Shown here one piece after another: positions 14,322 to 61,616 of a DNA stretch of 64,000 nt. The notes under the pieces are model-generated. The model saw only the letters and a program-made list of their open reading frames with translations. It did not search any database and was not told the origin of the DNA. A program made the position numbers and the translations under genes. Location: the IMG/VR virus record IMGVR_UViG_3300035698_007246, positions 62,001 to 126,000 of that record. One strand, given 5' to 3'. Positions within the stretch are counted from its first letter, which is position 1. The number at the start of each line of letters is the position of its first letter.

Positions 14322-14468
14322 ATTGATGAGAGTGAGAGTTCCCCAACATTAATTTGTTGGGGAATTTTTATTATATATTAGATAAAATATCGGGGATGTC
14401 TTTAAATTTTGTGTATGGAATTCTAATTAATTTAATATTATTCTTTATACAAATTTTTAAAAAAACTA

Positions 14469-14540: not shown

Positions 14541-16595
14541 ATGGAATTTATTAAATTTTCAAATGCCATAAGAAAACAATTTAATAAAATGGCAAAGACT
14601 GAAAAGTTATTTGTTGTTAAAGTTGATGATAAAAATGAACTTTGGAATTTTTATCTTAATAGTTTCCCTACTGGAACGAATGAAATATATAAAGAAAATA
14701 AGGAATACGATTGTAATTTTTGTAAGTCATTCATCAAAAAAGCTGGTCATATTGTAACGATTAAAAACAATAAACTGGTAAGTATTTTTGACATCACTAT
14801 CAATGATAGTACTTTTCAAGCAGTTGTAGACGCAATGTCCGAATATATCAAAGGAAAAGAAATTGATACAGTTTTTTGTCATGATGAAAATACAATCGGA
14901 ACGGAATTCAATACACAAATAACAGGCAATGGTTCAATTCGATGGAATCACTTTTATATTGATGTGCCAAATGAATTTATTAAAGATAAAAATGACATCG
15001 GCACGTATCGGGGTGATAATAGAACTACAAAGGGTGTTCTCTATAGAAGTTTAAAAGAACTTAGCCTTGAAGCTGCACAGATTGTTTTAGAGCTTATTGA
15101 AAGTGGAAGTCTCTATCGTGGTGATGAACATAAAAAAGTTGTAAAAGATTTTATTAAATCAAAGAAAACATTCAATAAGATTCCTGTTGCAAAACAAAAG
15201 ATATATTGTTGGTCATTAAAAGAATATGGTATTCGTAATACAGTTATTGGGAGTTTGTTGATTGATATTAGTGAAGGAAAGGATTTAGAATCATCGGTTA
15301 AATCTTTTGAATCTAAAGTTGCACCTCAGAATTATAAACGTCCAACGGCACTGGTAACTAAATGGATGATTGAAAATGCACAAAAAAAATGTGAAGAGCT
15401 TGGTATTGAAGCAAGTTTGTATAGACGTTGTGCTGTTGCTGAAGACATCACTATCAATAATGTTTTGTTTGCAGACCGAAGTGTTCAACCTGCAATGGGA
15501 GTTAATGCATTCGATATGCTTAAAAAAGATGTTGGTGATGTTGTGACTAATAAACAATTGGATAAGATTGAAGAGGTTCCTATTCAAACATTTATTGATA
15601 CAATACTTCCAAAAGCTAAATCATTTGAATTGTTATTGGAAAACAAACATGAAAACAATTTAATGAATCTTATTGCTCCTGTTAATCCAGACGCACCAAA
15701 TATTTTAAAATGGAATAACAATTTTAGTTGGGGGTATAATGGTGAAGTTGCTGATAGTATGAGGCAACGTGTCAAAAATGCAGGTGGACGAGTTGATGGT
15801 GTCTTTAGATTTAGTCATTCTTGGAATGAATTAGAACCTAATCAATCATTAATGGATTTACATGTATTTATGCCTGGAAATACTCACGTTCCTGGTAAAA
15901 TTCATGATAATTATGGTAATTATGAAAGGGTAGGATGGAATCATAGAAAACATAATAATTCAGGTGGTTCTCAAGATGTTGATTATGTTGACCAAGCTCC
16001 TCCAAAATATATACCTGTAGAAAATATCACGTTTCCAAATTTAGGAAAAATGCTTGATGGGAAATATATATGTAAAATTCATAATTGGAGTTATAGAAAT
16101 AGTGGAGGTAAAGGTAAAGCAGAAATTGAATTTGGTAGTAACATTTATAAATATGTATATCCATCTACTAAAAATAAAGAATGGGTTACTGTTGCAGAGG
16201 TAACTTTAAAAAATGGAGAATTCAGTATTAAACATATTTTACCTGAATCACAAGAGACAAAAGAAATATATGGTATCACTACCAATAAATTTCATCCTGT
16301 GACTATGATGATGAATTCTCCAAACCATTGGGATGGTGAAGAGACAGGTAATAAGCATTATTTCTTCATGCTTAAGGATTGTAAAACTAATGATACTATT
16401 CGTGGGATATACAATGAATTCATTAAGGAAGAATTGAACGAACATCGTAAAGTATTTGAAATGCTTGGTTCAAAGTTGAAAGCTGAACCTACTGATAATC
16501 AATTAGCTGGGTTGGGATTCTCTTCAACAAGACGTGATAGTGTCGTGTGTAAAGTTAAAGGAACTTTCAACAGAACAATTAAAATAACTTTTTAA
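14541..16595 (+). CDS. large conserved-type phage protein with internal YfaP/DUF2135-like domain
   Basis: DCNFCKSF N-terminal motif; MDLHVFMPG...GGSQDVD...PVENITF. Confidence 0.65.
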   Translation: MEFIKFSNAIRKQFNKMAKTEKLFVVKVDDKNELWNFYLNSFPTGTNEIYKENKEYDCNFCKSFIKKAGHIVTIKNNKLVSIFDITINDSTFQAVVDAMSEYIKGKEIDTVFCHDENTIGTEFNTQITGNGSIRWNHFYIDVPNEFIKDKNDIGTYRGDNRTTKGVLYRSLKELSLEAAQIVLELIESGSLYRGDEHKKVVKDFIKSKKTFNKIPVAKQKIYCWSLKEYGIRNTVIGSLLIDISEGKDLESSVKSFESKVAPQNYKRPTALVTKWMIENAQKKCEELGIEASLYRRCAVAEDITINNVLFADRSVQPAMGVNAFDMLKKDVGDVVTNKQLDKIEEVPIQTFIDTILPKAKSFELLLENKHENNLMNLIAPVNPDAPNILKWNNNFSWGYNGEVADSMRQRVKNAGGRVDGVFRFSHSWNELEPNQSLMDLHVFMPGNTHVPGKIHDNYGNYERVGWNHRKHNNSGGSQDVDYVDQAPPKYIPVENITFPNLGKMLDGKYICKIHNWSYRNSGGKGKAEIEFGSNIYKYVYPSTKNKEWVTVAEVTLKNGEFSIKHILPESQETKEIYGITTNKFHPVTMMMNSPNHWDGEETGNKHYFFMLKDCKTNDTIRGIYNEFIKEELNEHRKVFEMLGSKLKAEPTDNQLAGLGFSSTRRDSVVCKVKGTFNRTIKITF

Positions 16596-33641: not shown

Positions 33642-33750
33642 AGATGTACTCCCCTATCAAAAATAATAAAAGAAATACCTTGACTTTGTTTTGTTCCTAA
33701 AGTATCTTTTATACGTACTAAACAATTGAACTTAAACAAAAGGAAACACG

Positions 33751-33993
33751 ATGAAAAAATTAAATTATAATCCAAATAATCCAGATGATTACAATAGATT
33801 AATAAACGATTTTTATATAATGGTTACTGAAGAGAATGAAACTATTATGAATAATATAATGAAAGATTGTATTAAACAAAATAACGATGTTACAAAAACA
33901 ATGAAAAGGGGACTTGATTTAATTAAACAACGATGCATTGACACTGATAATATTCACATGTGGATACGTTTCAATAAAAAAGCATTTAATTAA
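33751..33993 (+). CDS. hypothetical protein
   Basis: behind promoter repeat. Confidence 0.6.
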   Translation: MKKLNYNPNNPDDYNRLINDFYIMVTEENETIMNNIMKDCIKQNNDVTKTMKRGLDLIKQRCIDTDNIHMWIRFNKKAFN

Positions 33994-34075
33994 TCTTTTC
34001 TCTTGACTTTGTTTTGTTCCTAAAGTATCTTTTATACGTACTTAAAATTAATAACTTTTTTAAAGGAGTGATGAA

Positions 34076-34555
34076 ATGGGTTTAAAATATTTAATAAGTA
34101 TCATTAATAAATGTGAGCTGGTAAATGAATACACTTATCAAACAGAAATTAAAAACGCTAACAATTTTTGTTTAACATTACATAACAAGAAATCTAAAAT
34201 TGATTTATTTATTATGTTCAAACACGAACATAATTTAATTAATATTTATATTAAGAATGGACATGTTGCAATAATTCTGAACAATGACAATTTAAATCTA
34301 TTAAAATTACATCTAATCGAAAAATTTAAAATTCCATTTCCTGTTGAATTTTGTTTGTGGTTCTCAAGTTGTTGTATGAATTCGACCAAACATTATAAAT
34401 ATGGAAACCACCAATTAACAAACATACAATACAGGAAATCAACACAAGATTATAAAAACAAACTTAATAAAAATATTATCACTTCTTTTAAATCTTCTGA
34501 AGATGATTTTAAATCTTTAATTAAAAAACTTGATTCTTTTAAAAAAGGAATGTAA
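34076..34555 (+). CDS. hypothetical protein
   Basis: behind promoter repeat. Confidence 0.6.
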   Translation: MGLKYLISIINKCELVNEYTYQTEIKNANNFCLTLHNKKSKIDLFIMFKHEHNLINIYIKNGHVAIILNNDNLNLLKLHLIEKFKIPFPVEFCLWFSSCCMNSTKHYKYGNHQLTNIQYRKSTQDYKNKLNKNIITSFKSSEDDFKSLIKKLDSFKKGM

Positions 34556-34806
34556 TAAAATGTTAAATAACGATACATTAAAAACTAATCCTACAATTAT
34601 GACTATCATTATTAATATTCAAACGATGTCAAAAATGAAAGGTAACGAAAAAACTTTTGATGAATTGGAAAATAAAACATATCAAGAGCTTAGTATAATT
34701 CAAGATTCTTTAATTAGAAAATTAAAATAAATACCTTGACTTTGTTTTATTCCTAAAGTATCTTTTATACGTACAAAACAATTGAACTTAAACAAAAGGA
34801 AACACT

Positions 34807-35139
34807 ATGAAAGAATTAAATTATATGATGCTTGGTAGATTACAATCTGATTGTGAATGTTTAAAATATTTATGGGCTAATGATGAACAAGAACAAATCA
34901 ATGGAAACATGACGAACGGAACAAATTATATGATGCTTAGTAGATTACAATCTGATTGTGAATATTATCTCAATGCTGGTGGTAGATGTTTAAAATATTT
35001 ATGGGCTAATGATGAACAAGAACAAATCAATGAAATGAAAAAACAGTATAATTTGATACCAACAGATAAAAAACCGGAATGGTTGACATATAAACAAATA
35101 GAAGAGTATGAAAAACTCATGGTTAAAAAGGATAATTAA
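34807..35139 (+). CDS. LPD11-like domain protein with partial N-terminal duplication
   Basis: YMMLSRLQSDCEYYL...LWA...QI...KPEWLT...YEK. Confidence 0.7.
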   Translation: MKELNYMMLGRLQSDCECLKYLWANDEQEQINGNMTNGTNYMMLSRLQSDCEYYLNAGGRCLKYLWANDEQEQINEMKKQYNLIPTDKKPEWLTYKQIEEYEKLMVKKDN

Positions 35140-35142
35140 AAA

Positions 35143-35514
35143 ATGACTTACAATCTTAAAAAAATATTATACAACAGAACAACAAACAAGATTCAACAAC
35201 AAAAGGTTTTAATTATGAATGAATGTAAAGATATAATAAAAATTAATGCATCAAATTTAACAATGGAAGAGATATCTTTCACCAACACAACAAACAAGTT
35301 TTGTAAATTTCATATATCATTTAATACTAAAACTAATATGGTTCATGCTCTAAGAAATATAATGGTTTCTGACTCTGGTTTCTATTCAATGATTAAAAGT
35401 AAGAAGATTGATTTATATACCTATGATGAATTAATAAAAGAAATTAAAAAGTATCACAAAATAAAAAAGATTAATATTAAACCTGTATATTGTAATTTTT
35501 CTTTTCACAATTAG
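35143..35514 (+). CDS. hypothetical protein
   Basis: ORF in operon. Confidence 0.55.
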   Translation: MTYNLKKILYNRTTNKIQQQKVLIMNECKDIIKINASNLTMEEISFTNTTNKFCKFHISFNTKTNMVHALRNIMVSDSGFYSMIKSKKIDLYTYDELIKEIKKYHKIKKINIKPVYCNFSFHN

Positions 35515-35757
35515 AGGAGCAACAACAAAATGAAAGATATAATTTATATAAGCAACGACCGAAAATTATACACATTACTTTTAAGACTATTCAAAAAAAT
35601 ACAAATATCTTTAAAATTATTTCACATCATAACCACCTGTCATTCATATAGTTACAACAAACTATAAAAATAAATTAAAAAGTACTTGCTTTTAAAATTG
35701 TATTAAAGTATCTTTTATACATCGAAAGAAACAAAACAATTTAAAACAAAAGGAAAC

Positions 35758-36435
35758 ATGATGAAAGATACTAAAAAGATAACAGATAAAAACACAAAAA
35801 AAGGAACAATCAAAATTGCTGGTCTTGAATTAACATTAGGTAATTCAAAACTTCCAATAACTACAGCAATTCTCAATATGGGAACTGCACACAATTGCCC
35901 CTCTGATAAATGTGGTCTTTGTCCTTTTGGTATCAATGGCAAAGGGAGATTAAAAAACAAATGTTATGCATTAAAATCTGAATACATGTATGTAAATACA
36001 AAATTAATGAGAGAACGTCAAGAAAAATATTGGTTAGAAACTCCAACAAAAACAATCGTTGATCATTTCAATTATGCTTTCCAAACTGGCAAAAAAGGAA
36101 AAGAAATAAACGCCGTAAGATTTAATGAATCCGGTGATTTTCATTCAAAGGAATGTCTTACAAAACTTAAGAAGATTGCAAAGGCATTCCCAAACATAGA
36201 ATTTTATACATATACTCATAGAAGTGATATAATGAAAAGTGTAACAGTAAACAGTTTACCTACAAACTTGAATATTAATCTTTCTTATGTTAATAATAAA
36301 AAAGGTTTCAATACTTTCTGTCTTGATACTCAATTCAAACCAGAAACAAAAACATTAACTTGCACCAAATGTTTTAAAGGCTGCACCCTCTGCCATAAAG
36401 CTAAAGGTTTAAACATTGCTGTAAAAATTCACTAA
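35758..36435 (+). CDS. Gp88-like Cys-rich phage protein
   Basis: GNSKL, CPS..CxxC..CYA, VRFNESGDF, FYTYT, C-terminal CxxC. Confidence 0.7.
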   Translation: MMKDTKKITDKNTKKGTIKIAGLELTLGNSKLPITTAILNMGTAHNCPSDKCGLCPFGINGKGRLKNKCYALKSEYMYVNTKLMRERQEKYWLETPTKTIVDHFNYAFQTGKKGKEINAVRFNESGDFHSKECLTKLKKIAKAFPNIEFYTYTHRSDIMKSVTVNSLPTNLNINLSYVNNKKGFNTFCLDTQFKPETKTLTCTKCFKGCTLCHKAKGLNIAVKIH

Positions 36436-36567
36436 GATAATTCAAGGGGAGCAATCCTCTAATTAAATTAAATTAAATTAAACCTTGACACTAATTATAC
36501 ATTAATATATCTTTATTACAGACAATGAAATTAAATTAAATTAAATTAAAACATAAAGGATGTAAAA

Positions 36568-36846
36568 ATGAATAAGTATCAAAATTTAGTTACACAACAC
36601 AATACAATATCAAAAAATATTATTTCTTCGTTAAAATTAGAAATAAATGAAAGTAACATTAAATCAAAATACATAAATTGTAATGCACTTCCCGTTAATG
36701 TATTTGATTATGATGAATTAGTTGTTGTGAATGATGAACTCACGTTTTTAGATGAATATGGAAATCATTATTCATTATATGCTAAATGTATTAATAATGA
36801 TTTAATTGAAATTTTATATAATATTGCAGACTTGAAAATAAATTAA
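36568..36846 (+). CDS. hypothetical protein
   Basis: behind promoter repeat. Confidence 0.6.
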   Translation: MNKYQNLVTQHNTISKNIISSLKLEINESNIKSKYINCNALPVNVFDYDELVVVNDELTFLDEYGNHYSLYAKCINNDLIEILYNIADLKIN

Positions 36847-36901
36847 ACCTTGACACCAATTATATCTTTATTACAGACAATGAAACAAAGGATAAAACAA
36901 A

Positions 36902-37132
36902 ATGAAACAATCTTTTAAAGACCTTGCTCAAAGAAGAGAGAACGCCCGTGAACGTTTTATTGATGTGATGATAGAACAATATCAGTTCACCAAAGAACAA
37001 GCACAACAGATACTTAAAACGTATCTTAAATTAAAGCTGGTTAAACTCTCTCCCAATGATGGACAATTCAATATTAAACATGGTGCATATATGGATAAAG
37101 CTGTACTTAAACGTGCATTGATTGTTGGATAG
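36902..37132 (+). CDS. hypothetical protein
   Basis: AAGGA RBS. Confidence 0.65.
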   Translation: MKQSFKDLAQRRENARERFIDVMIEQYQFTKEQAQQILKTYLKLKLVKLSPNDGQFNIKHGAYMDKAVLKRALIVG

Positions 37133-37529
37133 ATAAGAAACTATCTGATAAAATAAATAATGACGTTATAGAATTAACTCCCCAGAAAGGGCTTTAAAAT
37201 GATTGGTATACTCTTTGCTGTCTGGTTCTCCATCGCTATTATTCTTATGGGAATGATTAACCAAATCTCTATTATAGTGCTGTCTAACAAATCACCAGAG
37301 GAAAAAATAAAACTATTACAACTATTCTGTTCTAAAAATATAATCAATACCATGATTAAATACTATAAATTTAATAAAGCACTCAAAACTATATCCAAAA
37401 TAGTTAAGAAGGACAAACAAAATGAAACACTACTGTAAAATAATTAATCTTTTCTCTTGACACTAATTATACATTAATATATCTTTATTACAGATTAAAA
37501 TTTGAAATAACTTTAACAAAGGATTAAAA

Positions 37530-37799
37530 ATGAATAATTTAATTAGGTATCAAGTAAAAATTAAAAATACTGAAATTATAAAAATTGTATCTTTTTCAAA
37601 AACACAAAAAAGAAATGATGTTATTAAAAAATTTACTACATTATTAAATTTAGATACAACAGGCAGTAATAACGAATACATTATTAAACAAATTAATTGT
37701 AAAACTTGTACAGAATTTAATAGTTATATACACACTTGTGGTTTAGATAATACAATGACTAAATCACTTGATTCTTGTATTGAATGGAAAAAAAGATAA
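37530..37799 (+). CDS. hypothetical Cys-containing protein
   Basis: CKTC...C...C; behind promoter repeat. Confidence 0.55.
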   Translation: MNNLIRYQVKIKNTEIIKIVSFSKTQKRNDVIKKFTTLLNLDTTGSNNEYIIKQINCKTCTEFNSYIHTCGLDNTMTKSLDSCIEWKKR

Positions 37800-38039
37800 A
37801 GATAAAAATGTTTAAATTTAAACTAAGGAGTAAAACAAAATGATAAAATTATGTGTCGGTTCAATCGCTTTCCTTATCTATGCTGTTAGTATCTTACTTG
37901 ATAAAGACCTAAAACAAAAAGGAAAGATGTATTTTAAACAGTTTTGGAATGTTAAAAAACCAATAGGCATTATTGGAGTAGTCTCATTTGTGATATTTAC
38001 TATTACCAAAGCGTTCACCCAACACAAAAGGAAACTATA

Positions 38040-38460
38040 ATATTTCTATATATGTTCAATAAATGTACAAACTATGTACATAAAATGTACTTAAGACATT
38101 ACCAAAACCTATCTTATCTATTGGTAATGTCTTACAAGATATCATGTAAAAAATACCACATAATAGGGGTAACTCCCTGTGTGTGGTGTATACAATAAAT
38201 GTACATTACATAAAGGGTGGATACTGCTGGTGATGTCGCTCTGTTTAGATAATCTGCAAAGACATCACCGCAATTTTAACAGCCCAGAATGATTATATTA
38301 CGATATTCGAAATCTTTCTCGACGACGTTTGTATATTATGATTATTTTATATATTGAAATTACGTTATTCGTAATATATTTACAAATACCATTCTCATGA
38401 TGTCAATAAACTATTGGTATGATATTCTCCATAGCAATTCTTATACCAATAAAAATAAAA
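38040..38460. other. non-coding region rich in inverted repeats
   Basis: 14-bp IR 38092-38134; IRs 38155-38189, 38229-38269, 38413-38451; phased ATGTAC repeats. Confidence 0.7.
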
Positions 38461-38771
38461 TAAAACAAGAAATGTCTTGACATCATTTTGTTATTAAAGT
38501 ATCTTTAATACATAGAAATAAATTAAACATAAACAAAGGAAAAAACAAATGTTCAAAACAATAACAACAATTTTAATAATCATTTCCCTTTCATGTATTG
38601 CTATAATGGACGACAATGATAAAAAAGAAATGATGTCAAGTATTGATTCATTCAGAAATAATACTCATGAAACTATTTTAAATAAATTAAAATAACTATT
38701 GACATCATTTAAACATTAAAGTATCTTTAATACATAGAAATAAATTAAACATAAACAAAGGATAATATACT

Positions 38772-39029
38772 ATGAAAACGATTATATGTTCTACTACAAC
38801 ACAAAAAAAGAAATATGATCACAATGTTACAGCAAAAGTATATCGTATTAAAAATAACGTTCCCATTTTAATTGGACTGTGTGAATGGAATACCGGAAGT
38901 TGTAAAGGAACACTAAACGAAGTCTTTTCCTTTTTATTTGAACAAAAATTAATATCTAAAAAAGAATATAACAAATATAATCAATATTATATTCATGGAG
39001 AAAATAATATTAATATTATTGAAGTATAA
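38772..39029 (+). CDS. hypothetical protein
   Basis: behind promoter repeat. Confidence 0.6.
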   Translation: MKTIICSTTTQKKKYDHNVTAKVYRIKNNVPILIGLCEWNTGSCKGTLNEVFSFLFEQKLISKKEYNKYNQYYIHGENNINIIEV

Positions 39030-39039
39030 TAATTTACAA

Positions 39040-39164
39040 ATTTGACATCCTTATTTTATACAGTTGATAAAAATTATAAGGATGTCAAATCAATAAGTTA
39101 CAAAAAATGTCTTTAAGAGTCGTGTATAAAATAATATATGAAATGGTTATATTATTTTATACAC
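39040..39164. repeat. two perfect inverted repeats (15 bp and 17 bp) plus IHF-consensus box
   Basis: ATTTGACATCCTTAT/ATAAGGATGTCAAAT; GTGTATAAAATAATATA/TATATTATTTTATACAC; AATCAATAAGTTA at 39088-39100. Confidence 0.8.
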
Positions 39165-39257
39165 TAAAAATAAAATAAGAAATGTCTTGACATCATTTAA
39201 ATTATAATATATCTTTAATACGTAATAAAAAATAACAAATTTTTCAAAGGATTTAAA

Positions 39258-39833
39258 ATGACTACTTCAAAATTATACTTCAAATCAGACGAACAATTAT
39301 TAAATGCTGTTACTGTTGCTACACTTGGTAAAGGTCAATCATTCGCAAGTCTTACAGCAACGACATCACCAAAATGTACAAAGAAGCACAGAGTATCAAA
39401 AGATTTGTTCGACACAATATTTACTGGTGCTGTATACAAAACAACTGTTACAACGTGCAACATAAATGTAAAATATGAAAATGCTGTTAACAATCAATTA
39501 AAGCGGGAAGGTATGAATCAATTGACATTTGCTGGTGAGACTTTGCCTTATGGTGAGTGGGTTGATGGTCTTGAAAATATAGTAATTGTTCACAATGAGT
39601 CATATCAGTTACGTTACTTTGTGGGTATGAATGACAATAAGCCAAGTGTGGTATATCACTATGCAAACGGTGTTGAGCTAACTGAGTGGGAACGTGAACA
39701 GCTCAATGGGTTCCTTCCTAAAAAATATGCTGCTAAGAACCAAGGCACTGATAAGGAAATCAAACCTCGTAATGTAAAGTTTGCTGGTGTAGTTGAATTG
39801 AAATTAAATGGACAGCACTTAGTACGTAAATAA
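39258..39833 (+). CDS. hypothetical phage protein
   Basis: YENAVNNQLKREG...LPYGEW; promoter at 39187. Confidence 0.75.
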   Translation: MTTSKLYFKSDEQLLNAVTVATLGKGQSFASLTATTSPKCTKKHRVSKDLFDTIFTGAVYKTTVTTCNINVKYENAVNNQLKREGMNQLTFAGETLPYGEWVDGLENIVIVHNESYQLRYFVGMNDNKPSVVYHYANGVELTEWEREQLNGFLPKKYAAKNQGTDKEIKPRNVKFAGVVELKLNGQHLVRK

Positions 39834-39847
39834 AAACTTGTAAACCC

Positions 39848-39877
39848 GAAACGTTCAAGACATCTCTTGAACGTTTC
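39848..39877 (+). terminator. hairpin after gene
   Basis: GAAACGTTCAAGA-CATC-TCTTGAACGTTTC. Confidence 0.6.
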
Positions 39878-40225
39878 ACAACACTTTTATAATGGAGATT
39901 TAAAATGAATGACAACGAAATGAATGAATATCTTGACGATAGTTTAAATTTAAGTGATGATGAAAAACTGTTAAGTGAATGTAGTAATGATGATGATATG
40001 TTGATTTTAAATGAAAGTCAAGGTCAAGACAATGAGTAAGATGATTAAAAGGATTAAACGAATGAATACAAACGAACAAATCAATACATCACTTAAAACC
40101 TCCATTGGTATAGTATGTGGCTTATTTGTATTCATCCTTATACTAAACTATATCTTTGCATGTTTTAATAGCTGTACCGCTCTGCAATACATCGAGACAT
40201 CATTACAAAGAATGTATTAATTCAC

Positions 40226-40491
40226 TGGCATAGTATTTGATTCAAAGCAAGTATCATACCAATGATGTCTTGACATGATACGACATCATTTAAAAACTGG
40301 CACACTTATTGACCTTAGCAAGTACCATGCCAATATAAAACTAAGGAATCCCTCTGATAATTCTACCATACCAAGAACTGTACACATCTCGGTGATGTCC
40401 TATATGTCAAGAACCATAGTAGAAATAGTTGGCACGATATTTGCCCAGAGCAAACCCTGTGCCACCCCTGCCCAAAGCAATAACCATGCCA
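40226..40491. promoter_or_regulatory. cluster of sigma54 (-24/-12)-like sites in inverted pairs
   Basis: TGGYA-N6-TTGC on - strand at 40247-61, 40318-32, 40450-64, 40477-91; + strand partners at 40226-40, 40298-312, 40430-44. Confidence 0.7.
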
Positions 40492-40524
40492 GGACCTTGG
40501 AATTCGCTATATATGGTGTTTTGA

Positions 40525-40690
40525 GGGGGACCCCCGGGGGCGGAATCAATGCCCGACCCTGTGTTTTGACATCCATGAGAATCAAAGAGAATCAAAGAGA
40601 ATCACTCCCAAAATAAAAATTTTTACAATATATTTCGACATCACTGAGAATCATTTACAGAATAAAAATTTTTACAATTTTTTTGGAAAT
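40525..40690. repeat. GGGGGACCCCCGGGGG motif, GAGAATCAAA tandem repeats and AATAAAAATTTTTACAAT x2 at the strand switch
   Basis: read directly. Confidence 0.75.
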
Positions 40691-40691
40691 G

Positions 40692-41150
40692 TCAGAATGA
40701 AATTAGGATTTGTCTAACCTTCATCAATATTATTCCGAGTATATTTCGACTTTCAATTTTTGTACAGTATCCGCATGAGCAATTTCCCCAGAAGTTGTCG
40801 CACCAGGTATTTCCTTCAACGAGTTCATGTGGTAATGTTTTTATAAGTCTAATTAGTAGTTCTTGATTTTGAGTAAATTTATTAATTACAGCTTCAATCA
40901 TGACATCCTTTTTACTATCGTCATCCCAATACATAATATCTTTTTTATATTTTCTTGCATATTTTTTAGTATCATATGGGCTATTCATTCTATATATATT
41001 CTCAAAATGTTCACCTTTGAATTTATTAGCTTGGTAGAAATGTTCTGAGGATTTCCATTTATATATTTTACCATCTTTGACAATGATAAAAGGAGCTTTT
41101 TCATACATGTTAGATAGGTAGCGATGTTCATTTCTGAATTTATCAATCAT
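40692..41150 (-). CDS. NADAR (YbiA-like) family protein
   Basis: YLSNMY, SSEHFYQANKF, KFTQN, LVEGNTWCDNFWG, NILGIILMKVR. Confidence 0.9.
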   Translation of the reverse strand: MIDKFRNEHRYLSNMYEKAPFIIVKDGKIYKWKSSEHFYQANKFKGEHFENIYRMNSPYDTKKYARKYKKDIMYWDDDSKKDVMIEAVINKFTQNQELLIRLIKTLPHELVEGNTWCDNFWGNCSCGYCTKIESRNILGIILMKVRQILISF

Positions 41151-41715
41151 ATAAATATTCCTTATTTTCTATATTAATAACAGCTTCGGCAAATTTAAAA
41201 CTCATAAATATTTTTTTAAACTCTGCTGTGTTTCTTTTAGTTTCATATTCATCCTTTGAATTAAACCATTCATTCCATTCGCTCACAGTCTTAGTTTTAC
41301 AACCAATTAAGATAGTTTGTTTTTTATGATTATAATATACACTCCATTTGCATTGACCGATTGATTTCATTCCATCTTGCCAAAATCCAGATTTCCAAGT
41401 TCCAGATTCCCAAATTCCATCTTGCCAAAATCCATCTTGCCAAAATCCAGATTTCCAAGTTCCAGATTCCCAAATTCCAGATTCCCAAATTCCAGATTTC
41501 CAAAATCCATCTTCCCAAAATCCATCTTCCCAAGTTCCAGATTCCCAAATTCCAGATTCCCAAATTCCAGATTTCCAAGTTCCAGATTGCCAAGTTCCAG
41601 ATTGCCAGACAACCATATCATTTATTATATATATATATTCATTTTTAACAGAAATATCACCACATTTAAGCCATTCAGGACATTCCTTTAATTTTCTTAT
41701 TTCAGATAATTTCAT
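41143..41715 (-). CDS. W-x-x-G-x pentapeptide-repeat protein
   Basis: WESGI/WQDGF/WKSGT repeats; C-terminal IGCK..T...W. Confidence 0.8.
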   Translation of the reverse strand: MKLSEIRKLKECPEWLKCGDISVKNEYIYIINDMVVWQSGTWQSGTWKSGIWESGIWESGTWEDGFWEDGFWKSGIWESGIWESGTWKSGFWQDGFWQDGIWESGTWKSGFWQDGMKSIGQCKWSVYYNHKKQTILIGCKTKTVSEWNEWFNSKDEYETKRNTAEFKKIFMSFKFAEAVINIENKEYLYD

Positions 41716-41892
41716 ATTGCTTTCCTATTAATTCATTATATTTTGGACATTTCCGAGATTAGAGACTTCATAATTTTGGGGAAGTCTTTGATGGGTTTCC
41801 ATTCTTCTTCAATTATTATTAATTGTTCATTCATTTTAAAACGCTCCTTATAATGTGGTTATTATTCCGAGGACAATTGCCCATTTTTCATT

Positions 41893-42825
41893 TTACTCCT
41901 GGAAGTGTTTATTAAGAAGTTCGGTGACGAGTTCACCAAATTCATTTTGGAATGCTTCTCCATTTTCGTGGTATTGGAACATCCCCCAGCCTCTGACATC
42001 CAGTAGAAGGTTCTCATCACCATCGAATATCATTTGACCGTTAGGGTCGTAGTTGAAGGGTGATTTAATAAGTTTGTTAAGACCTGAGTCTTTAGAGTCA
42101 AAGTCATTTTCTTCATGACATCCCCCAGCTTCTATAATTTCGCCTTTTTTATTTTCATATTTGTTATGTGTAATTCGTTTACAGATGGAAGTTTCTGGAG
42201 CTGGTTCTCTATTATAAAGAGTTCTAAACGCTTTAATATGAGCCATTAGTCCGGCAGCAACGTAGACATAGACATATTCGCCATAGTCTTTGAAATTTCG
42301 AATATATTTAATTGGGACTAAATCAGTGAGCCAGACATCATTTTCAGATTTAAAGAATGGGAATTTATCTTTAGCCATTTCTTTGGCATTGATTTCGAGG
42401 ACAACGGGTTCACCGTGTCTGCTACCGACATCAATGGCAGTTTGGAAGTCATGGCTGAGGTGGACATGATTTCGTTGTTGTTTAGAGATTCCATCTTTTT
42501 TGATAGAGTCTATAAATTTTATGGCAGTTCCGTGGTATAGAGTGTCAGGTGGTTTAATGGGTTTGAGACCTAAGTTGACATTAATGGAATGACCTTGATT
42601 TGCACGAATACGTTTTTTATCTGTACTGAATATAAATCGTTTTTTATTGTTGTCTTTAACGATGTGTTTTAGTGTAGAAATGCCAATGACTATATTATGG
42701 TCATTCATTTTTTTAATTAGTTCTTGAGTATTAGCCCATCCACCATCATCAAGTTTGAGTCCAATGGTATCTGGTTTATGTCTGAGGACAAGGCTCAGGA
42801 ACATGCTTAGTTTTTTATCTTTCAT
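41893..42825 (-). CDS. kptA: RNA 2'-phosphotransferase (Tpt1/KptA) with C-terminal extra domain
   Basis: LSLVLRHKP, RIRANQGHS, LYHGT, RNHVHLS, SENDVWL. Confidence 0.9.
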   Translation of the reverse strand: MKDKKLSMFLSLVLRHKPDTIGLKLDDGGWANTQELIKKMNDHNIVIGISTLKHIVKDNNKKRFIFSTDKKRIRANQGHSINVNLGLKPIKPPDTLYHGTAIKFIDSIKKDGISKQQRNHVHLSHDFQTAIDVGSRHGEPVVLEINAKEMAKDKFPFFKSENDVWLTDLVPIKYIRNFKDYGEYVYVYVAAGLMAHIKAFRTLYNREPAPETSICKRITHNKYENKKGEIIEAGGCHEENDFDSKDSGLNKLIKSPFNYDPNGQMIFDGDENLLLDVRGWGMFQYHENGEAFQNEFGELVTELLNKHFQE

Positions 42826-42882
42826 CGTCACCACCTTTGATTTTTTTAATCATATTATTTATTAAACCAAATATTACAAACA

Positions 42883-43512
42883 TTATTTACCACCGTCCTT
42901 CTTTTCATCACCCTCATGTTTAAATCTATCAGCAAGAGCTTTTGCTTTGTCAACAACATCAAGTTTCATAAGTTCCATATAATCAAACTTATTATTAAGA
43001 GCGTCAACGACATCAATATCGTCACCTTCAAATCCAAGAAACTCATTGTTATATGTTTGGATATACTTAGGGATTTTTAGATTTTTTATTACAAAATCAT
43101 ATCCTTCTTGAGTTGGGGTCCAAAGTCCTGCTTTTCTATTCATACTTTTTTCTGAGATGTTTGGATGGATAAGTCTCCAGAATACTAGTTGAGAAAAGTT
43201 TCTGTCTTTGGGTGTCAATGTAAAATCTTCTTTGTGAAGAGGATGTTCCCCATCAAAAAGTCTTACCAACATAATAAGGTCAGCAACAGCGGTTGACACA
43301 ATTGACTTTTTCCACACTTTTGCTTTTTGTTGACAGCACGGACATTCAACACCATCTTTTTTATACTTGAGTTTATCAACGTATGCTTTGGCTGTGTTGA
43401 GTGGGGTAATAATTCTATCAGTTTCTTTATTTTTTAATCTTCCAATATTAGATAATTGAAATCCTGGGATTGTGGCACAATCCGTCCAAGTTTCTTCATC
43501 TTTAGTTATCAT
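42883..43512 (-). CDS. NUMOD4-like N-terminus plus CPCC domain protein
   Basis: W...PGFQLSNIGRLKN; ECPCCQQ. Confidence 0.55.
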   Translation of the reverse strand: MITKDEETWTDCATIPGFQLSNIGRLKNKETDRIITPLNTAKAYVDKLKYKKDGVECPCCQQKAKVWKKSIVSTAVADLIMLVRLFDGEHPLHKEDFTLTPKDRNFSQLVFWRLIHPNISEKSMNRKAGLWTPTQEGYDFVIKNLKIPKYIQTYNNEFLGFEGDDIDVVDALNNKFDYMELMKLDVVDKAKALADRFKHEGDEKKDGGK

Positions 43513-43799
43513 TTTTAGTTTCCCTTTCTTTATACCAAATAAATGTATCAATATTACCCTCTTCACCAGTGGCACAATGTCTAATTGATTTAATTTTAAT
43601 ATCAGTATTATTTTCAAGCCAAATATTCATATTGACTTCATAACTATATTTAAATTTTTTAACTTTTAACATTTTCTTTTTCTTTCTTTTATTTTTATAT
43701 CAAATAGTTGTAATTATGTTTGCGTCATATGGGTCACCATATTCTTCAAACCAATCATTTATTTCATCTTCAATCCATTTAATTTTATTATTAAATATT

Positions 43800-44333
43800 T
43801 TAACTTGTAATATGCTCATAATCTCCATCCGGGATATAATATGTTCGTGCTAATTCAGGTTTAAGCAGTTCAACTTGAATACCTATTCCTTTGTAAATTT
43901 CATCATCTCTGACGATATACTCTTCACCTATGTCATACCAATCATCTTTACTTGCTCTGATAATTTTAATTCGTCTTCGTGATGTTGCTTTCTCCATTAC
44001 AATTTTAACAAATTCATTTCGTAAAGCATAGTAGCATTCATCCCATTCTTTCCCATGTGGGTCTTTAACGGTATCATCATCAAAAACTCCCACTCTGACA
44101 TGAGCCAATTCATGACCTGTAATTTCCACGAGTCTGCTCATTGGTAACCTATAATTCAAATGAATTAATTTTGCGGTTCCATTTTCAACAAATATTTCAC
44201 TGATTTTTTCAGATTCCATATTTGGGTCAAATGCAATTTTAATATCAATATTCCCATACAAATTAGTATATGCTTTTATTATCACATCAAAGGGATTACT
44301 CAATTTTATAGGCATTACTATGCACCTCCACAT
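43800..44333 (-). CDS. SprT-like HExxH metallopeptidase domain protein
   Basis: GHELAHV...PHGKEW. Confidence 0.6.
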   Translation of the reverse strand: MWRCIVMPIKLSNPFDVIIKAYTNLYGNIDIKIAFDPNMESEKISEIFVENGTAKLIHLNYRLPMSRLVEITGHELAHVRVGVFDDDTVKDPHGKEWDECYYALRNEFVKIVMEKATSRRRIKIIRASKDDWYDIGEEYIVRDDEIYKGIGIQVELLKPELARTYYIPDGDYEHITS

Positions 44334-52400: not shown

Positions 52401-53612
52401 CTATCCCTTTATCACACCAATTTGTGAAACAATTTCAACAACTTCAACTAAATCCTTTTCATTTTCAATCACCTGAGCGATGTCCTTATAAGCAGGACCG
52501 GATTCATCAAGTATTTTTGAAATATCTGGAGTTGAAACTTCAATTCCCTTTTTCTTAAATCGAGCAACCATATCATCAATGTTAAAAGTTTTACGAGCGT
52601 TAGTTCTTGACATCACTCGACCAGCACCATGACTTGCAGAATCAAAACTATCTTTATTACCAAGACCTTTGACAATATAAGATTGTGTTTCCATTGACCC
52701 CGGAATAATTCCCATATCACCTTCACGTGCTCGAATAGCACCTTTACGATGTATCATCACATTTTCACCAAAATGGTTTTCCGTTGCGGCGTAATTGTGA
52801 TGGGCATTTACTTCCATAGACACAGTTTTTGATATATGGCCATAATGTTTTTCAATTAGATTGAAAACAAGGCTTTTAAATCTTTCCATCATCACATATC
52901 TATTTTGTTTTGCAAAATCAAGTGCAAAATTCATAGCGGTGACATAATCTTGACCTTCTTGAGTATCCATTGGTAGAAATGCTAATTCCCATGACAGTGG
53001 AACCTTAGACCAATATTTTGCATTCAAGTCTTCAGCAAGTTTATTAAAATGTCCACAGACTTTGTATCCAAGATTACGACTACCAGAGTGCAACATAATA
53101 CATAAATTCCCTTTAGAATTTTTCTGCAATTCGATAAAATGGTTTCCTCCACCGAGGGTTCCAAGACTACACCGAGCAACATCAAGATTTTCTTGAATTA
53201 TATCCAATTCAGGTGCTGAATTAAATCCAACCCATTCTTGTTGAGTTTTATGTCTTCCAAATCCAACTGGAATAACTCTACGAGCACTATCAAGTACACA
53301 TTTTACAATACTTCTATTTTGAGTATCACAATTATATGTTAATATCGAAACTGGGATATTAGTTTCAAGAAAAGCCATCCCACATCCAATGTCAACACCC
53401 ACAGCATTTGGAATAACCACATCTTTTGTAGCAATAACACCACCAATTGGCATTCCATACCCTTGATGACCATCAGGCATTATTGACACATGTTTAAATA
53501 TTGCAGGATGATTAGCTAAATTCATAGCTTGGTCAATCGCACCTTGCTCTAAATCAGTTGCCCAATTTTTAATTGGTAACCGTTGTTTATCGTTATCATA
53601 TATTACATTCAT
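52401..53612 (-). CDS. rtcB: RNA 3'-phosphate/5'-OH ligase RtcB
   Basis: MPDGHQGYGMPIGG, GVDIGCG, GTLGGGNHFIE, HSGSR, HHNY, HRKGA, IPGSM, HGAGR, AYKD. Confidence 0.97.
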   Translation of the reverse strand: MNVIYDNDKQRLPIKNWATDLEQGAIDQAMNLANHPAIFKHVSIMPDGHQGYGMPIGGVIATKDVVIPNAVGVDIGCGMAFLETNIPVSILTYNCDTQNRSIVKCVLDSARRVIPVGFGRHKTQQEWVGFNSAPELDIIQENLDVARCSLGTLGGGNHFIELQKNSKGNLCIMLHSGSRNLGYKVCGHFNKLAEDLNAKYWSKVPLSWELAFLPMDTQEGQDYVTAMNFALDFAKQNRYVMMERFKSLVFNLIEKHYGHISKTVSMEVNAHHNYAATENHFGENVMIHRKGAIRAREGDMGIIPGSMETQSYIVKGLGNKDSFDSASHGAGRVMSRTNARKTFNIDDMVARFKKKGIEVSTPDISKILDESGPAYKDIAQVIENEKDLVEVVEIVSQIGVIKG

Positions 53613-55426: not shown

Positions 55427-56254
55427 TTATTCCCAAAATACTTCTACTTCAAAATTTTCACGTTCTAAAATTACATTTGTTGGTTTATTTTCCAACAACA
55501 ATGTGATGTTTTTCTTAATCACCTTAATATAATTAGACATATTGAAGTTTGTTTTCCATGCTTTTCCCTTAGTCCAGATAACTTTTCCAGTTTCAAGCAA
55601 CTCTTTCCTATAATTTGAATCTAATAAGTCCGCTGTAACATGCCCTACCCTACCAGATTTAATCGCATTTAATAAATCTTTATTATTGATTACTTTTCCA
55701 TCTCCAAGATTAATTACTTTTGCGTCAATAGGTAAAGTTTCAAGAATATCTTTATTAATTATACATTTTGTTTTATCAGTAATTGGCAAATCAACAATAA
55801 GGGTGTTTGTTGAATAAATTGCATTGTATATTGATGTTTCTGATGATTCTAAATTGAGGTGTTGGACATGTTTATAGTTTTTATTAAGTAATTTGCCTGT
55901 ATCCCCTGCTGTAAATACAGTATAATATGGCAAATAATACTCTTTTTTGATTGTTGATTGTAACCATTCGAGTATAGGAGACTTTGTATATGAAATATTT
56001 ATTACACCAACGTTATTATTTTGACAATGTTTCAAATTAATATTATCTGGAGCATAATTTCTATTAAGTATCCACTTGAGGTTAGGCATTTGACGAATTA
56101 TCTTGTTATCAACCTTGCTTGTTTTAACAGATAAGACTTCACATTCCAACATGCTATGGGATAATGTATCCCGACCACCTACAAAATAATGTTCTGATAA
56201 GTCATTTTGTAATTTTTTTGTAAAATCTTTTTTATCTTTAAATAAAATCTTCAT
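55427..56254 (-). CDS. D-2-hydroxyacid dehydrogenase-like protein (degenerate)
   Basis: MPNLKWI, LPITDKTKCIIN, VINLGDGKVIN, ADLL. Confidence 0.65.
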   Translation of the reverse strand: MKILFKDKKDFTKKLQNDLSEHYFVGGRDTLSHSMLECEVLSVKTSKVDNKIIRQMPNLKWILNRNYAPDNINLKHCQNNNVGVINISYTKSPILEWLQSTIKKEYYLPYYTVFTAGDTGKLLNKNYKHVQHLNLESSETSIYNAIYSTNTLIVDLPITDKTKCIINKDILETLPIDAKVINLGDGKVINNKDLLNAIKSGRVGHVTADLLDSNYRKELLETGKVIWTKGKAWKTNFNMSNYIKVIKKNITLLLENKPTNVILERENFEVEVFWE

Positions 56255-57376: not shown

Positions 57377-58840
57377 TTATAAACATCCTTTTAATATATG
57401 TGCTATAACATCAACAGTCCAACCATTACCTAACATCTTATACCGTTGACTATTACTCACAAATGTAATATTCTCCATTTTTAAACCCGATAATTCCACT
57501 TTCAATAAGTTGTGACGCAATTTGTTCAAGTTGTCTATGGATAATTGAATGTTCACTTTGTCCATTACAAATGAAAAGATTTTCAATTCTATTATCAATT
57601 TTATCAAGATTGATATGATGAACTTTTTCATTACTTGTAAGTTGTCGTCCAATACAATCTTCCATAACTTTCCTGTGAACGTCTTTACCATTAATACGTT
57701 TTCTGTATCCACGACTTCCCAATTTATTTTTTTGATTATCTGAGAATAATGGGTCTCTGTGTCGTCTCCAATTTTGGTAATGTTTATTACACATTCCTCT
57801 TGCACCGCCACCCTTTTCTCCAATTTTTCTATCACAATACTTACATTTTTGTTCTGATTGAAATAGTTTTTTAGGTAATTCAACTGAACCATGTCGTTCA
57901 TATCGTTTATAATGTAAAGAACAGAGTTCTCCATATTTATGTGTTGTTGCTTGTCTATTACATCCGCTAACACTACATTTTTGTTTTTGCATAAAAATAC
58001 TCCATTGTTATTTATTTCCTGTGTAATACACATAAAGTATTTATACAAATTCGAAATTTTAGTATAATCATCTGGTACTGTCTGTAATCTTTCACATTCA
58101 ATTGGTGTTAATTTTCGCCACTCAACACCATCTAATATAGCATAATTATATGGGGTTGTGACACGTAATATATTAAATTTATCTTTAAAATTAAAACCCC
58201 CTTTATTGAAACCATGTGGCGTTTCAAAAACTAACTGCCGTCTACATCTATCAAAATATGATTTTAAATCCCCACCTTTAAAATAATGTGCATCAACACA
58301 ATAACTTTTATCTCTATCAACATATCCATGTTCTATAATATTTGTTAATAATACTCCTTTATCTTCAGGTTGTTTAATGTTAGGAATATTAGTCCAATAA
58401 TATCTAACACGATTTTGTGCTGATACTAATACACTATTAATACAAATTGGTTCAACACCCAGATGTTCTGATATAATATCTAAATATTCTTTCTTCATTC
58501 TTACATTCTCGAATAAAAAATATTTAGGTCTACATTCTTTTAGTAATCGGACAAACTCAAAAAACAATTTTGACCGTGGGTCATCAAATGCTAATTGTTT
58601 GCCAGCAAAACTAAATCCTTGACATGGACTTCCCCCAACAAGTAAATCAATCGGTTCTAAATTTTCAGCTCGTACATTACAAACATCACCAAGTTGTATA
58701 GTATCTGGGTAATTATAATCATTTACTTGGTTGGCATATTTATCAATTTCACTACTATAACGTTTATTAACCTTAATACCTAATCGGTCTAAAACTATCC
58801 AGATACATCCCATACCATTAAAAGTACTCAACACATTCAT
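57377..58840 (-). CDS. C5 cytosine DNA methyltransferase with 200-codon in-frame insert between motifs IX and X
   Basis: STFNGMG, GGSPCQGFS, FENV, QNRVRYYW, RKLTPIECERLQTVPDDYT [insert] VSNSQRYKMLGNGW. Confidence 0.9.
   Translation of the reverse strand: MNVLSTFNGMGCIWIVLDRLGIKVNKRYSSEIDKYANQVNDYNYPDTIQLGDVCNVRAENLEPIDLLVGGSPCQGFSFAGKQLAFDDPRSKLFFEFVRLLKECRPKYFLFENVRMKKEYLDIISEHLGVEPICINSVLVSAQNRVRYYWTNIPNIKQPEDKGVLLTNIIEHGYVDRDKSYCVDAHYFKGGDLKSYFDRCRRQLVFETPHGFNKGGFNFKDKFNILRVTTPYNYAILDGVEWRKLTPIECERLQTVPDDYTKISNLYKYFMCITQEINNNGVFLCKNKNVVLADVIDKQQHINMENSVLYIINDMNDMVQLNYLKNYFNQNKNVSIVIEKLEKRVAVQEECVINITKIGDDTETHYSQIIKKINWEVVDTENVLMVKTFTGKLWKIVLDDNLQVMKKFIISILIKLIIELKIFSFVMDKVNIQLSIDNLNKLRHNLLKVELSGLKMENITFVSNSQRYKMLGNGWTVDVIAHILKGCL
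57453..57992 (-). CDS. HNH homing endonuclease nested in the alternative frame of the methyltransferase
   Basis: two CxxxxC/CxxC...CxxHY Zn repeats; VHRKVME...VHHINLDKIDNRIENL...H; GGAG RBS 7 nt upstream. Confidence 0.9.
   Translation of the reverse strand: MQKQKCSVSGCNRQATTHKYGELCSLHYKRYERHGSVELPKKLFQSEQKCKYCDRKIGEKGGGARGMCNKHYQNWRRHRDPLFSDNQKNKLGSRGYRKRINGKDVHRKVMEDCIGRQLTSNEKVHHINLDKIDNRIENLFICNGQSEHSIIHRQLEQIASQLIESGIIGFKNGEYYICE
57461..58060 (-). mobile_element. homing-endonuclease insertion (promoter + RBS + HNH), neither intron nor intein
   Basis: 600 nt separating normally adjacent MTase motifs. Confidence 0.75.
58038..58052 (-). promoter_or_regulatory. late promoter for the nested HNH (GAATTTGTATAAATA)
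   Basis: identical to 26551-26565. Confidence 0.65.
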
Positions 58841-60158: not shown

Positions 60159-61616
60159 TTATTCAGGTACATTCACTTGGTATTTTTCCAAAGCCTTTTC
60201 CATGATAGCAAAAGGTGTGAAATCTTTTCCACCAAGTACAGAAGTAAGAACAGCAGGTGAAAATCCAGAGACAAGTCCAACATCTTTTGAGTTAGCTTTT
60301 TCTGGCGAGCCTCCCATACCACAAGTATTCCAATATACAATCTTAGGACGACTGAAACCAGCCTTTTCCCATCTGTCGATTGCAACTGATACTTCAGCTC
60401 CAGAATTTTTACATCCAGTATTCCATCCATATCCACCGTTACCATTAAATTGCATATCCGAAATAATCAATAGACAATTCGGAATTTGTTCATCAGTAGC
60501 ATTAAATAATTCAGCATATTCTAAAATAGTATCAAGAGCCTTTACAATATCAGTACTTGCAATACTTCTATCGAAAAGATGAGTTTGTTTTAGAGCTTCT
60601 GAAAATGTGTATGGAGTGTTATCAGGTTTCTTACTCCAATCTGTTAATTGAGATTCACTTGAAAACTGTACATACTTTCTATAGAAAGGATTTCCCTTTC
60701 CGATTCTGTCAGAACAATACAATCCAAGAGAACGACTCACATCAATAGCTCTTATAGAACCACCAACGATATTTCTCATTGAAGAAGATGAATCAACGAT
60801 TGGAAGAATTCTCAAATCATTATTTTCCATATAATTAGGCAATGCGTCAAATTGTGCGTCCGCAATTCTTGAGTCGCCATTTTCAGCAGTTCTCAAACAA
60901 TCATGTGGAAACAACACAGAAGCATTGATTTTTGCTTTCTTTTTCGGGTCTTTACTTACAAGAGCGTCTTTATAAGATGAGAAACGGTCTTCATCATGCT
61001 TATTAAACACGTTTGTGTAAAGAGACATTGCCTTTGATGGTAATTTTTCGTAGTCCACTTTATTCCATTGCTTTTTACAAAGGAGAGTTTCTACAATATT
61101 CTTACGACCAGCAGAAAGTAATCTACGGAATTCACCAATTTCACGAACAACCTTCATTTGTCTCAAAGCTCTTAAGATTTGTTTGTCCTTTTTCTTTGCC
61201 CATTTCGAAGCTAAGAAATCTTTAACAGCAATCTTTTCAGCCCATGCAGACGCAGCAGTTTCTTCGACGTCACTATTAAACGTTGAACGCAAATCATCCC
61301 ATCTACCATGTTCGGGTATATACATTATATTTGCAGCAACCCATTCAGGTGACTCATTCGACAACCATTTTAAACAATTTCTAAATCCTTGTCTATTTCC
61401 AGCACCACCCCTTGCATCTCTAACCCAAAATAATAATTTCATTGCAAGTTCATAATTACCAGAATACCAAATTGGTTGGAATAAATCTAAAGCATTAGCA
61501 CCATCTCTTGATGTTCCACGTAACGACCCGGCTTTACTAAAAAATTCAATTGCGTGGTTTCCACAATGTTCATATTGTATTGCACCATTTTCTGTTTTTA
61601 TAAAATTTTTAGACAT
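60159..61616 (-). CDS. DUF2828-type TROVE/Ro60-like helical domain + vWA protein
   Basis: TENGA, FWVRDARGGAGNR, GRWDDL, KW, IVDSSSSM (MIDAS), ISDMQF, IVYWN, VSGFSP. Confidence 0.85.
   Translation of the reverse strand: MSKNFIKTENGAIQYEHCGNHAIEFFSKAGSLRGTSRDGANALDLFQPIWYSGNYELAMKLLFWVRDARGGAGNRQGFRNCLKWLSNESPEWVAANIMYIPEHGRWDDLRSTFNSDVEETAASAWAEKIAVKDFLASKWAKKKDKQILRALRQMKVVREIGEFRRLLSAGRKNIVETLLCKKQWNKVDYEKLPSKAMSLYTNVFNKHDEDRFSSYKDALVSKDPKKKAKINASVLFPHDCLRTAENGDSRIADAQFDALPNYMENNDLRILPIVDSSSSMRNIVGGSIRAIDVSRSLGLYCSDRIGKGNPFYRKYVQFSSESQLTDWSKKPDNTPYTFSEALKQTHLFDRSIASTDIVKALDTILEYAELFNATDEQIPNCLLIISDMQFNGNGGYGWNTGCKNSGAEVSVAIDRWEKAGFSRPKIVYWNTCGMGGSPEKANSKDVGLVSGFSPAVLTSVLGGKDFTPFAIMEKALEKYQVNVPE

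Follow-up and report, generated by a model that had tools for sequence, protein, structure and literature searches.

Promoters of the sigma-54 (-24/-12) class are silent until an ATP-driven activator fires them, as at the NtrC-activated glnAp2 promoter. Their consensus, TGGCAC-N5-TTGCW, places a GG and a GC dinucleotide 10 bp apart. Here we analyse a 266-base non-coding stretch of a salt-lake jumbo phage that carries seven predicted sites of this type, packed face to face. It lies in a 64,000-nucleotide stretch (hereafter the window; positions 62,001 to 126,000 of IMG/VR record IMGVR_UViG_3300035698_007246, a 223,879-bp contig from salt-lake metagenomes). The phage sites share with glnAp2-type promoters the consensus with its exact spacing and the flanking preferences, and an NtrC-type enhancer lies beside some phage arrays. 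They differ in being overlapping opposed pairs, arrayed 2-9 deep, in having no sense gene and no recognisable enhancer or activator in the window, and in being almost confined to phages.

To our knowledge, phage use of sigma-54 promoters has rested on one report, that of Pseudomonas phage YuA (Ceyssens et al. 2008, as cited in PMC10914365). The YuA GenBank record (NC_010116) notes promoter-trap activity at three sites. The YuA sites are single, sense-oriented, lie within the structural genes and match the consensus weakly; we found no canonical site or pair in YuA, and rejected it as a model for arrays. In E. coli, sigma-54 holoenzyme binds DNA in a transcriptionally inactive state and binds widely within genes, not only at classical promoters (PMC4591121). 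Those are scattered single sites in a bacterial chromosome, and not dense palindromic arrays in phage non-coding hubs. Bidirectional sigma-70 promoters are reported to use two opposed promoters on one short stretch of DNA, with divergent starts about 18 bp apart (Warman et al. 2021). There the shared element is reportedly the near-symmetric -10 hexamer, whereas here two full sigma-54-type promoters interdigitate and firing would need an activator. Iteron-plus-DnaA-box origins of plasmids and phages, and DnaA-titrating loci such as datA, resemble the arrays in having units of about 20 bp, repeated at 21-25 bp spacing beside DnaA boxes and AT-rich DNA, and clustered high-affinity sites (putative in the arrays) for a host protein without a regulated gene. 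In the arrays, however, the repeat equals a host promoter consensus, alternates in orientation and has no linked initiator gene, and the window lacks DnaA boxes. Finally, terminase recognition arrays of the lambda cosB type are repeated sites just upstream of the terminase operon with a GC-rich tract nearby, as are many of the arrays studied here. The present motif is shared by phages with unrelated small terminases, is not at the mapped ends of phage PaP1 and is not next to a terminase gene in the window. Literature searches aimed at sigma-54 sites in phages found no description of this architecture.

Seven -24/-12-type sites between converging genes

The observation made in the earlier note, of seven sigma-54-type sites within 266 bp at a transcription convergence point, was confirmed. 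On the plus strand the sites lie at 40226-40240, 40298-40312 and 40430-40444, and on the minus strand at 40247-40261, 40318-40332, 40450-40464 and 40477-40491. To determine whether such clustering is expected by chance, we counted the pattern TGGYAY-N5-TTGM in the window and in 100 dinucleotide-preserving shuffles. The pattern occurred 9 times in the 64 kb, against 1.25 ± 1.06 in the shuffles, none of which reached 9. Seven of the nine lie within the 266 bp. One correction to the description of all seven as consensus sites is needed: only the four minus-strand sites and the plus-strand site at 40430 are exact GG-N10-GC, whereas the plus-strand sites at 40226 and 40298 read GG-N10-GA.

Six of the sites form three head-to-head pairs of 35-36 bp. 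In pair 1 (40226-40261), the plus site has GA at -12, the minus site has GC at -12 but TGGTAT at -24, and 6 bp lie between the -12 elements; the predicted starts are about 40252 (+) and 40235 (-). In pair 2 (40298-40332), the plus site has GA and the minus site GC at -12, the gap is 5 bp and the predicted starts are about 40324 (+) and 40306 (-). In pair 3 (40430-40464), both sites have the full consensus (TGGCAC-N5-TTGC) across a 5-bp gap, with predicted starts at about 40456 (+) and 40438 (-). The lone minus-strand site at 40477-40491 (TGGCAT-N5-TTGC) has a predicted start at about 40465, pointing left into pair 3. All four perfect-GC minus-strand sites point left.

The setting is as the note described. 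The GC content is about 30%, and the array fills a 470-bp gap between a rightward block of small early-type genes, each with a TTGACA-N17-TATCTT promoter, and a leftward block. The last gene of the rightward block (40011-40220, plus strand) encodes a 69-aa small membrane protein; it is conserved in a relative (L355), so it is a real gene. The last gene of the leftward block (40692-41150, minus strand) encodes a NADAR-domain protein. No sense gene therefore lies downstream of any site; leftward transcripts from the array would be antisense to the membrane protein gene and rightward ones antisense to the NADAR gene. An Rfam search of 38-43 kb gave no hit, and the downstream stretches tested (40330-40575), including the GC-rich stretch at 40456-40575 and the inter-pair spacers, folded no better than shuffles.

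Distribution and context of arrays in other phages

To ask whether the palindrome is a hairpin or a protein site, we searched IMG/VR with the blocks fixed and everything else free. The search returned at least 120 stretches, against a rough chance expectation of two or three. In about 130 such palindromes from 119 loci, the N5 spacers matched their mirror partner at about 1.3 of 5 positions, which is chance; only the -24 and -12 blocks are kept, so this is not a hairpin. A logo of 969 distinct half-sites matched the canonical sigma-54 consensus at positions that had not been selected: T at -27 (56%), G/A at -20 (63%/31%), R at -19, T at -17 (50%) and A/T at -11 (87%). In a second scan allowing 0-30 bp between opposed -12 elements, about 92% of pairs fell at gaps of 3-8 bp. 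This spread of about half a helical turn argues against a rigid dimeric protein reading both halves at once.

Arrays sit in long non-coding hubs. Many loci carry 7-9 alternating sites within about 200 bp, spaced 21-22 bp head-to-head and 25 bp back-to-back, and almost every sigma-54-like site of a locus lies in its array. Units within an array are often near-identical, so arrays grow by tandem duplication. A pattern demanding one and a half palindromes hit at least 120 IMG/VR stretches but only five contigs, all of them from MAGs, in 596 Gb of genomes from 185,579 bacterial and archaeal species. The array-bearing loci fall into about 110 lineages by our clustering and range from 34% to 63% GC. 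Among 12 arrays that are homologous by overall similarity, blocks differ at 4.3% of cells, N5 spacers at 22.6% and linkers at 21.1%. Whether relatives keep the GG-N10-GC spacing or only the palindrome had been set beforehand as a test of the sigma-54 reading, and the outcome favours sigma-54: the spacing is kept on both strands while the spacers drift freely.

We next examined gene context, using a crude codon-usage gene caller of our own and loci chosen for having at least one pair. Of 86 scorable pairs, 53 lie between divergent genes and 3 between convergent ones; divergent pairs are 7.6% of all adjacent gene pairs in the same loci. Counted per lineage, for arrays of four or more sites, 11 are divergent, 12 tandem, 2 convergent and 3 overlap a called gene. 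The convergent setting in the window is therefore unusual but not unique. In 61 arrays from 14 lineages, a large-terminase gene (TerL) lies mostly 0.4-2.2 kb away (typically about 1.3 kb; three lie about 5.5 kb away) and is always transcribed away from the array. Sites pointing toward and away from the terminase operon are balanced, and in the best-sampled lineage, which is marine, strong sigma-70-type promoters lie between the array and both flanking operons. The array is thus not simply the late promoter.

Perfect DnaA boxes (TTATCCACA) are about 40-fold enriched within 400 bp of arrays (0.25 against 0.006 per kb). They occur in tandem at an 11-bp period, once inside an array, and near poly(A) or poly(T) runs of 25-38 nt. 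In an unbiased sample of 43 hubs from phages with at least 85% identical TerL, 5 hold nine sigma-54 sites and no box, 6 hold 0-1 site and 5-7 boxes, 3 hold mixtures and about half hold neither. Across 41 hubs of this lineage, site number and box number correlate at r = -0.49, a figure confounded by relatedness. A perfect NtrC-type enhancer (TGCACCA-N3-TGGTGCA) lies beside or inside arrays in two array-bearing loci, L145 and L156. Its 5+5 core also matches in loci L175 and L193, and a near-perfect copy lies in L162; this gives 5 hub hits in 104 kb against 4 in 940 kb elsewhere. No palindromic enhancer shared across lineages was found beyond the NtrC-type sites in two lineages, and the window contains no NtrC-type site, although the sites of other activators cannot be recognised from sequence.

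A tblastn search with E. coli RtcR and RpoN found no activator gene and no rpoN homologue in the window or in about 1.9 Mb of array-bearing loci. No phage protein family is shared by the array-bearing lineages, and proteins specific to array-bearing members of the marine lineage are absent from the window and from nearly all other lineages. This points to a host factor, the simplest reader of so uniform a motif.

One IMG/VR hit proved to be a Pakpunavirus of Pseudomonas aeruginosa, a bacterium that has rpoN. The 750-bp region tested, a non-coding hub upstream of a SprT-like gene, is present in 123 GenBank records, including the well-studied therapeutic phages PAK_P1, PAK_P4, PaP1 and JG004. 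It holds a single perfect site and one pair, TGGCAC-N5-TTGC-AATT-GCAA-N5-GTGCCA; the single site lies about 150 bp to the left of the pair. Across seven sequenced genomes the GG and GC dinucleotides of the pair are invariant, whereas in phages EM and pPA-3099 both N5 spacers are completely replaced and one left -12 block reads GTGC in place of TTGC. The PAK_P4 record annotates, from RNA-seq, a minus-strand RNA (PAK_P4as16, 55650-55850) whose 5' end lies inside the palindrome at 55823-55856. A sigma-70-like promoter is also annotated within the RNA, so its origin is ambiguous. The stretch between the two Pakpunavirus sites varied too little for an RNA structure to be judged. PAK_P3 has two single, diverging sites at the syntenic spot. 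By contrast, no array was found in the TerL-upstream regions of cultured relatives of array-bearing lineages: Pelagibacter phage HTVC115P, HMO-2011, Roseobacter CRP-1, Sinorhizobium phiM6, Vibrio CHOED, Caulobacter RW and Myxococcus Mx8.

Possible roles of the array

The motif, its architecture, its pattern of conservation, its distribution and its contexts are established by the sequence comparisons, whereas sigma-54 binding, firing, the start points and the biological purpose are inferred from them. On this evidence the sites are probably read by host sigma-54 polymerase. Our preferred reading, which we hold only tentatively, is that the array is a cluster of docking sites for the holoenzyme in a transcription-free, origin-like non-coding hub. 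In this view each palindrome is two overlapping promoters whose -12 elements face each other across 3-7 bp, and only one polymerase could occupy it at a time, in either orientation. With starts about 12 bp past the -12 GC, the two promoters of a pair would start about 18 bp apart and point away from each other, so that each unit would be a compact two-way promoter and not a converging pair. The bound enzyme should stay closed until an ATP-dependent activator opens it; NtrC is a candidate in some phages. In the window, firing would mainly give RNA antisense to the early gene block and, to a lesser extent, RNA antisense to the NADAR/Tpt1 block, and could also open the DNA next to the iteron-like and AT-rich repeats. 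The enrichment between divergent genes and the precedent of YuA agree with this reading. Against it, no sense gene or structured RNA lies downstream in the window, two of the three plus sites lack the C of the -12 GC, and no activator gene was found.

The interpretation in the earlier note was thus partly supported. Its assignment of the sites to sigma-54-type elements, and not to a hairpin or generic palindrome, is supported, and its suggestion of a host-polymerase loading site tied to replication is compatible with the DnaA boxes in sister phages. A roadblock between convergent blocks is not supported as a general rule, given the scarcity of convergent contexts. The decoy that it proposed and the rpoN-positive host that it implied remain inferences for this phage, whose host, a salt-lake bacterium, uses Shine-Dalgarno sites.

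The array conserved across more than a hundred phage lineages, from 30% to 63% GC, yet almost absent from cellular genomes, implies a widespread way for phages to engage the alternative polymerase of the host. The exchange with DnaA boxes and the NtrC-type enhancers suggest a link between phage replication or developmental timing and host physiology. Since the pair is present in Pseudomonas phages and host rpoN mutants can be made, the question is directly testable.

Of the alternatives, a sigma-54 sink or barrier survives best, although we consider it unlikely. Here the array would bind holoenzyme, or free sigma-54, without ever being fired; as the phage genome multiplies, the sites would titrate the scarce sigma factor and shut down sigma-54-dependent host programmes, or the stable closed complexes would act as a barrier or insulator. 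The sites are packed at maximal density in both orientations, with no orientation bias toward genes, and in the window they are clustered without a sense gene downstream or an activator gene nearby. Arrays lie in divergent or convergent gaps, where no transcription would sweep bound protein off, and the DnaA boxes of the sister hubs could equally act as a DnaA sink. However, the conserved hub position and the adjacent NtrC-type enhancer in some phages suggest regulated firing, and there are only 2-9 sites per genome. A sink gives no reason why DnaA boxes and sigma-54 sites should replace each other rather than add up, and a barrier is unnecessary between divergent operons, the commonest context.

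An origin-of-replication module is about as unlikely, though it too is a live alternative. The repeated units would play the part of iterons, and sigma-54 polymerase plus an activator would open or prime the DNA or activate the origin by transcription, a job done in sister phages by a DnaA filament on tandem boxes. The DnaA-box enrichment, the exchange between sites and boxes in hubs with similar TerL, the unit spacing of 21-25 bp elsewhere and the repeats beside the array in the window speak for this. In the window the spacings are 20-21, 27, 51 and 112 bp, AT-rich repeats are present and there is no DnaA box. Against an origin, no sigma-54-driven origin is known to us, no initiator gene was linked to the arrays, about half of the sister hubs have neither motif and DnaA boxes can also be transcriptional operators. 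Moreover, the array lies at a cumulative GC-skew maximum and a gene convergence, which fits a terminus better than an origin, though the switch in gene strand confounds the skew. A more far-reaching version, likewise unlikely but not excluded, is that phages carry in one hub interchangeable cassettes of binding sites for host DNA-opening machines, either tandem DnaA boxes or opposed sigma-54 promoters. Sigma-54 polymerase and its activator would then be recruited not to express genes but to license or open a phage origin, or to be soaked up, and the phage would tie its replication or developmental switch to a host signal such as nitrogen status.

Less likely still is a site for a phage-encoded protein unrelated to sigma-54, such as a small terminase subunit (a pac or cos site), a replication initiator or a repressor whose half-site happens to resemble the consensus. 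The position upstream of terminase genes, the GC-rich tract, like a cos nicking site, that is often adjacent, and the co-variation of the array with one early-gene module within the marine lineage favour it. However, the motif is the same in more than 100 lineages with unrelated neighbouring genes, it matches sigma-54 at unselected positions, and the variable 3-7 bp gap does not fit a rigid dimer. No terminase gene lies near the array in the window, and contigs from 4 runs, in which the array is identical, read straight through it. In PaP1, whose ends were mapped experimentally (PMC3652863), the pair lies about 12.8 kb from the end and outside the 1190-bp terminal redundancy, which argues against a packaging site in that lineage.

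Chance clustering, or a hairpin such as a bidirectional terminator, is effectively refuted by the shuffles, the non-complementary spacers and the recurrence of the architecture in well over a hundred phage contigs, even though the region folds better than shuffles because of the inverted blocks (z = -3.2 and -3.8 for 40226-40340) and one terminator-like hairpin overlaps pair 1.

Relatives of the phage and features flanking the array

A megablast search of GenBank phages found no close relative of this phage, and in IMG/VR only the phage itself was found with the two flanking proteins. One 70%-identical relative was found in metagenomes, but its contig stops just before the array. A literature search on 'Gp88' led to a paper on an unrelated ICP1 protein. 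The genes of the window include those for RtcB, a Tpt1/KptA fusion, NADAR, a Ro60-like DUF2828 protein and a C5 methyltransferase. There is no tRNA near the array; the only one in the window is at 63848.

Three exact copies of GACATCATT (40196 +, 40261 - and 40282 +; within 40196-40290) bracket pair 1. The same word is part of the -35 region (TTGACATCATT) of the early-type promoters of the phage at 38699 and 39187, and eight of the ten exact copies in the window lie at 38.4-40.3 kb. To the right of the array, iteron-like repeats at 40571-40688 (plus strand) comprise GAGAATCA four times, three of them at 10-bp spacing, and a 49-bp direct repeat (40591-40639 and 40640-40688) with A+T-rich cores; together with the array these make an origin-like non-coding hub. 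Between the two lies a G5/C5/G5 tract (40523-40543). G5 or C5 runs accompany arrays in 120 of 145 hubs elsewhere, a modest excess over our rough estimate of about 63% by chance.

Transcription signals of the early-type genes

A recurring early-type promoter, TTGACA(TCATT)-N17-TATCTTTATTAC, was found at window positions 33700-39260 (e.g. 38699-38727 and 39187-39215), where it lies about 35 nt upstream of many small plus-strand genes. Shine-Dalgarno-like sequences precede 72 of 104 called genes, so the host is unlikely to be a member of the Bacteroidota. A perfect hairpin with a 13-bp stem follows the 191-aa gene (window 39848-39877). This hairpin is kept in the 70%-identical relative (locus L355) through compensatory changes on both arms, and it is likely a terminator or regulatory hairpin.

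Other genes of the window

The window encodes a set of RNA-repair and counter-defence-type genes (40692-44333, 52401-53612 and 60159-61616): NADAR, a Tpt1/KptA 2′-phosphotransferase fused to an extra C-terminal domain, a SprT-like protein, an RtcB ligase and a Ro60-like DUF2828/DUF7788 protein. In bacteria, rtcBA is itself controlled by sigma-54 and RtcR, but no link between these genes and the array was shown. The stretch at 41440-41590, inside the gene at 41143-41715, had 10- to 30-fold higher contig depth, many variants and rearranged joints in all four metagenome runs. This looks like either a repeat shared with other genomes or a hypervariable repeat inside a gene.

A GP88-family protein (PF17338, E = 1.4e-20) is encoded at 35758-36435. 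Members of the same family or of the related PHROGs 1392 and 2554 lie 0.1-1.6 kb from arrays in two large lineages; this probably reflects shared synteny and not an independent association. The C5 cytosine methyltransferase of the window (57377-58840) has homologues of 46-58% identity in five other phage loci (L042, L055, L070, L113 and L136), and in L042, L055 and L070 the homologue is the first gene beside the sigma-54 array. Finally, a 684-aa protein (14541-16595) strongly matches phrog_1735, which is annotated as YfaP or DUF2135 in some records. It is 45-49% identical to proteins of many large Vibrio, Serratia, Salmonella and Klebsiella phages.

Repeats in the hubs of other phages

An abundant marine phage group, with at least 600 IMG/VR relatives of one TerL, carries 5-7 perfect DnaA boxes in tandem at an 11-bp period (loci L229, L231, L234, L237, L239, L249, L123 and L030). 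These boxes lie upstream of TerL, in the hub where sister phages carry sigma-54 arrays. Other sisters have different repeats (e.g. GGGCATTCT four times in locus L255). The divergent hub of Caulobacter phage RW (loci L219/L221, record positions 2820-2875) carries TTGGCAC-N5-GTGCC and TGGCAC-N5-ATGCCA, which are opposed -24-like elements without -12 elements. This is a different arrangement and may be unrelated.

The Pakpunavirus hub (positions 1540-1760 in L372, the PAK_P4 locus, and 14190-14420 in locus L368) also holds four GGACAGATTTTTA-type repeats and three GTTAGCANGCTA-type repeats upstream of the sigma-54 sites. The 137-bp segment between the single site and the pair is highly conserved, with one apparently compensatory stem change.
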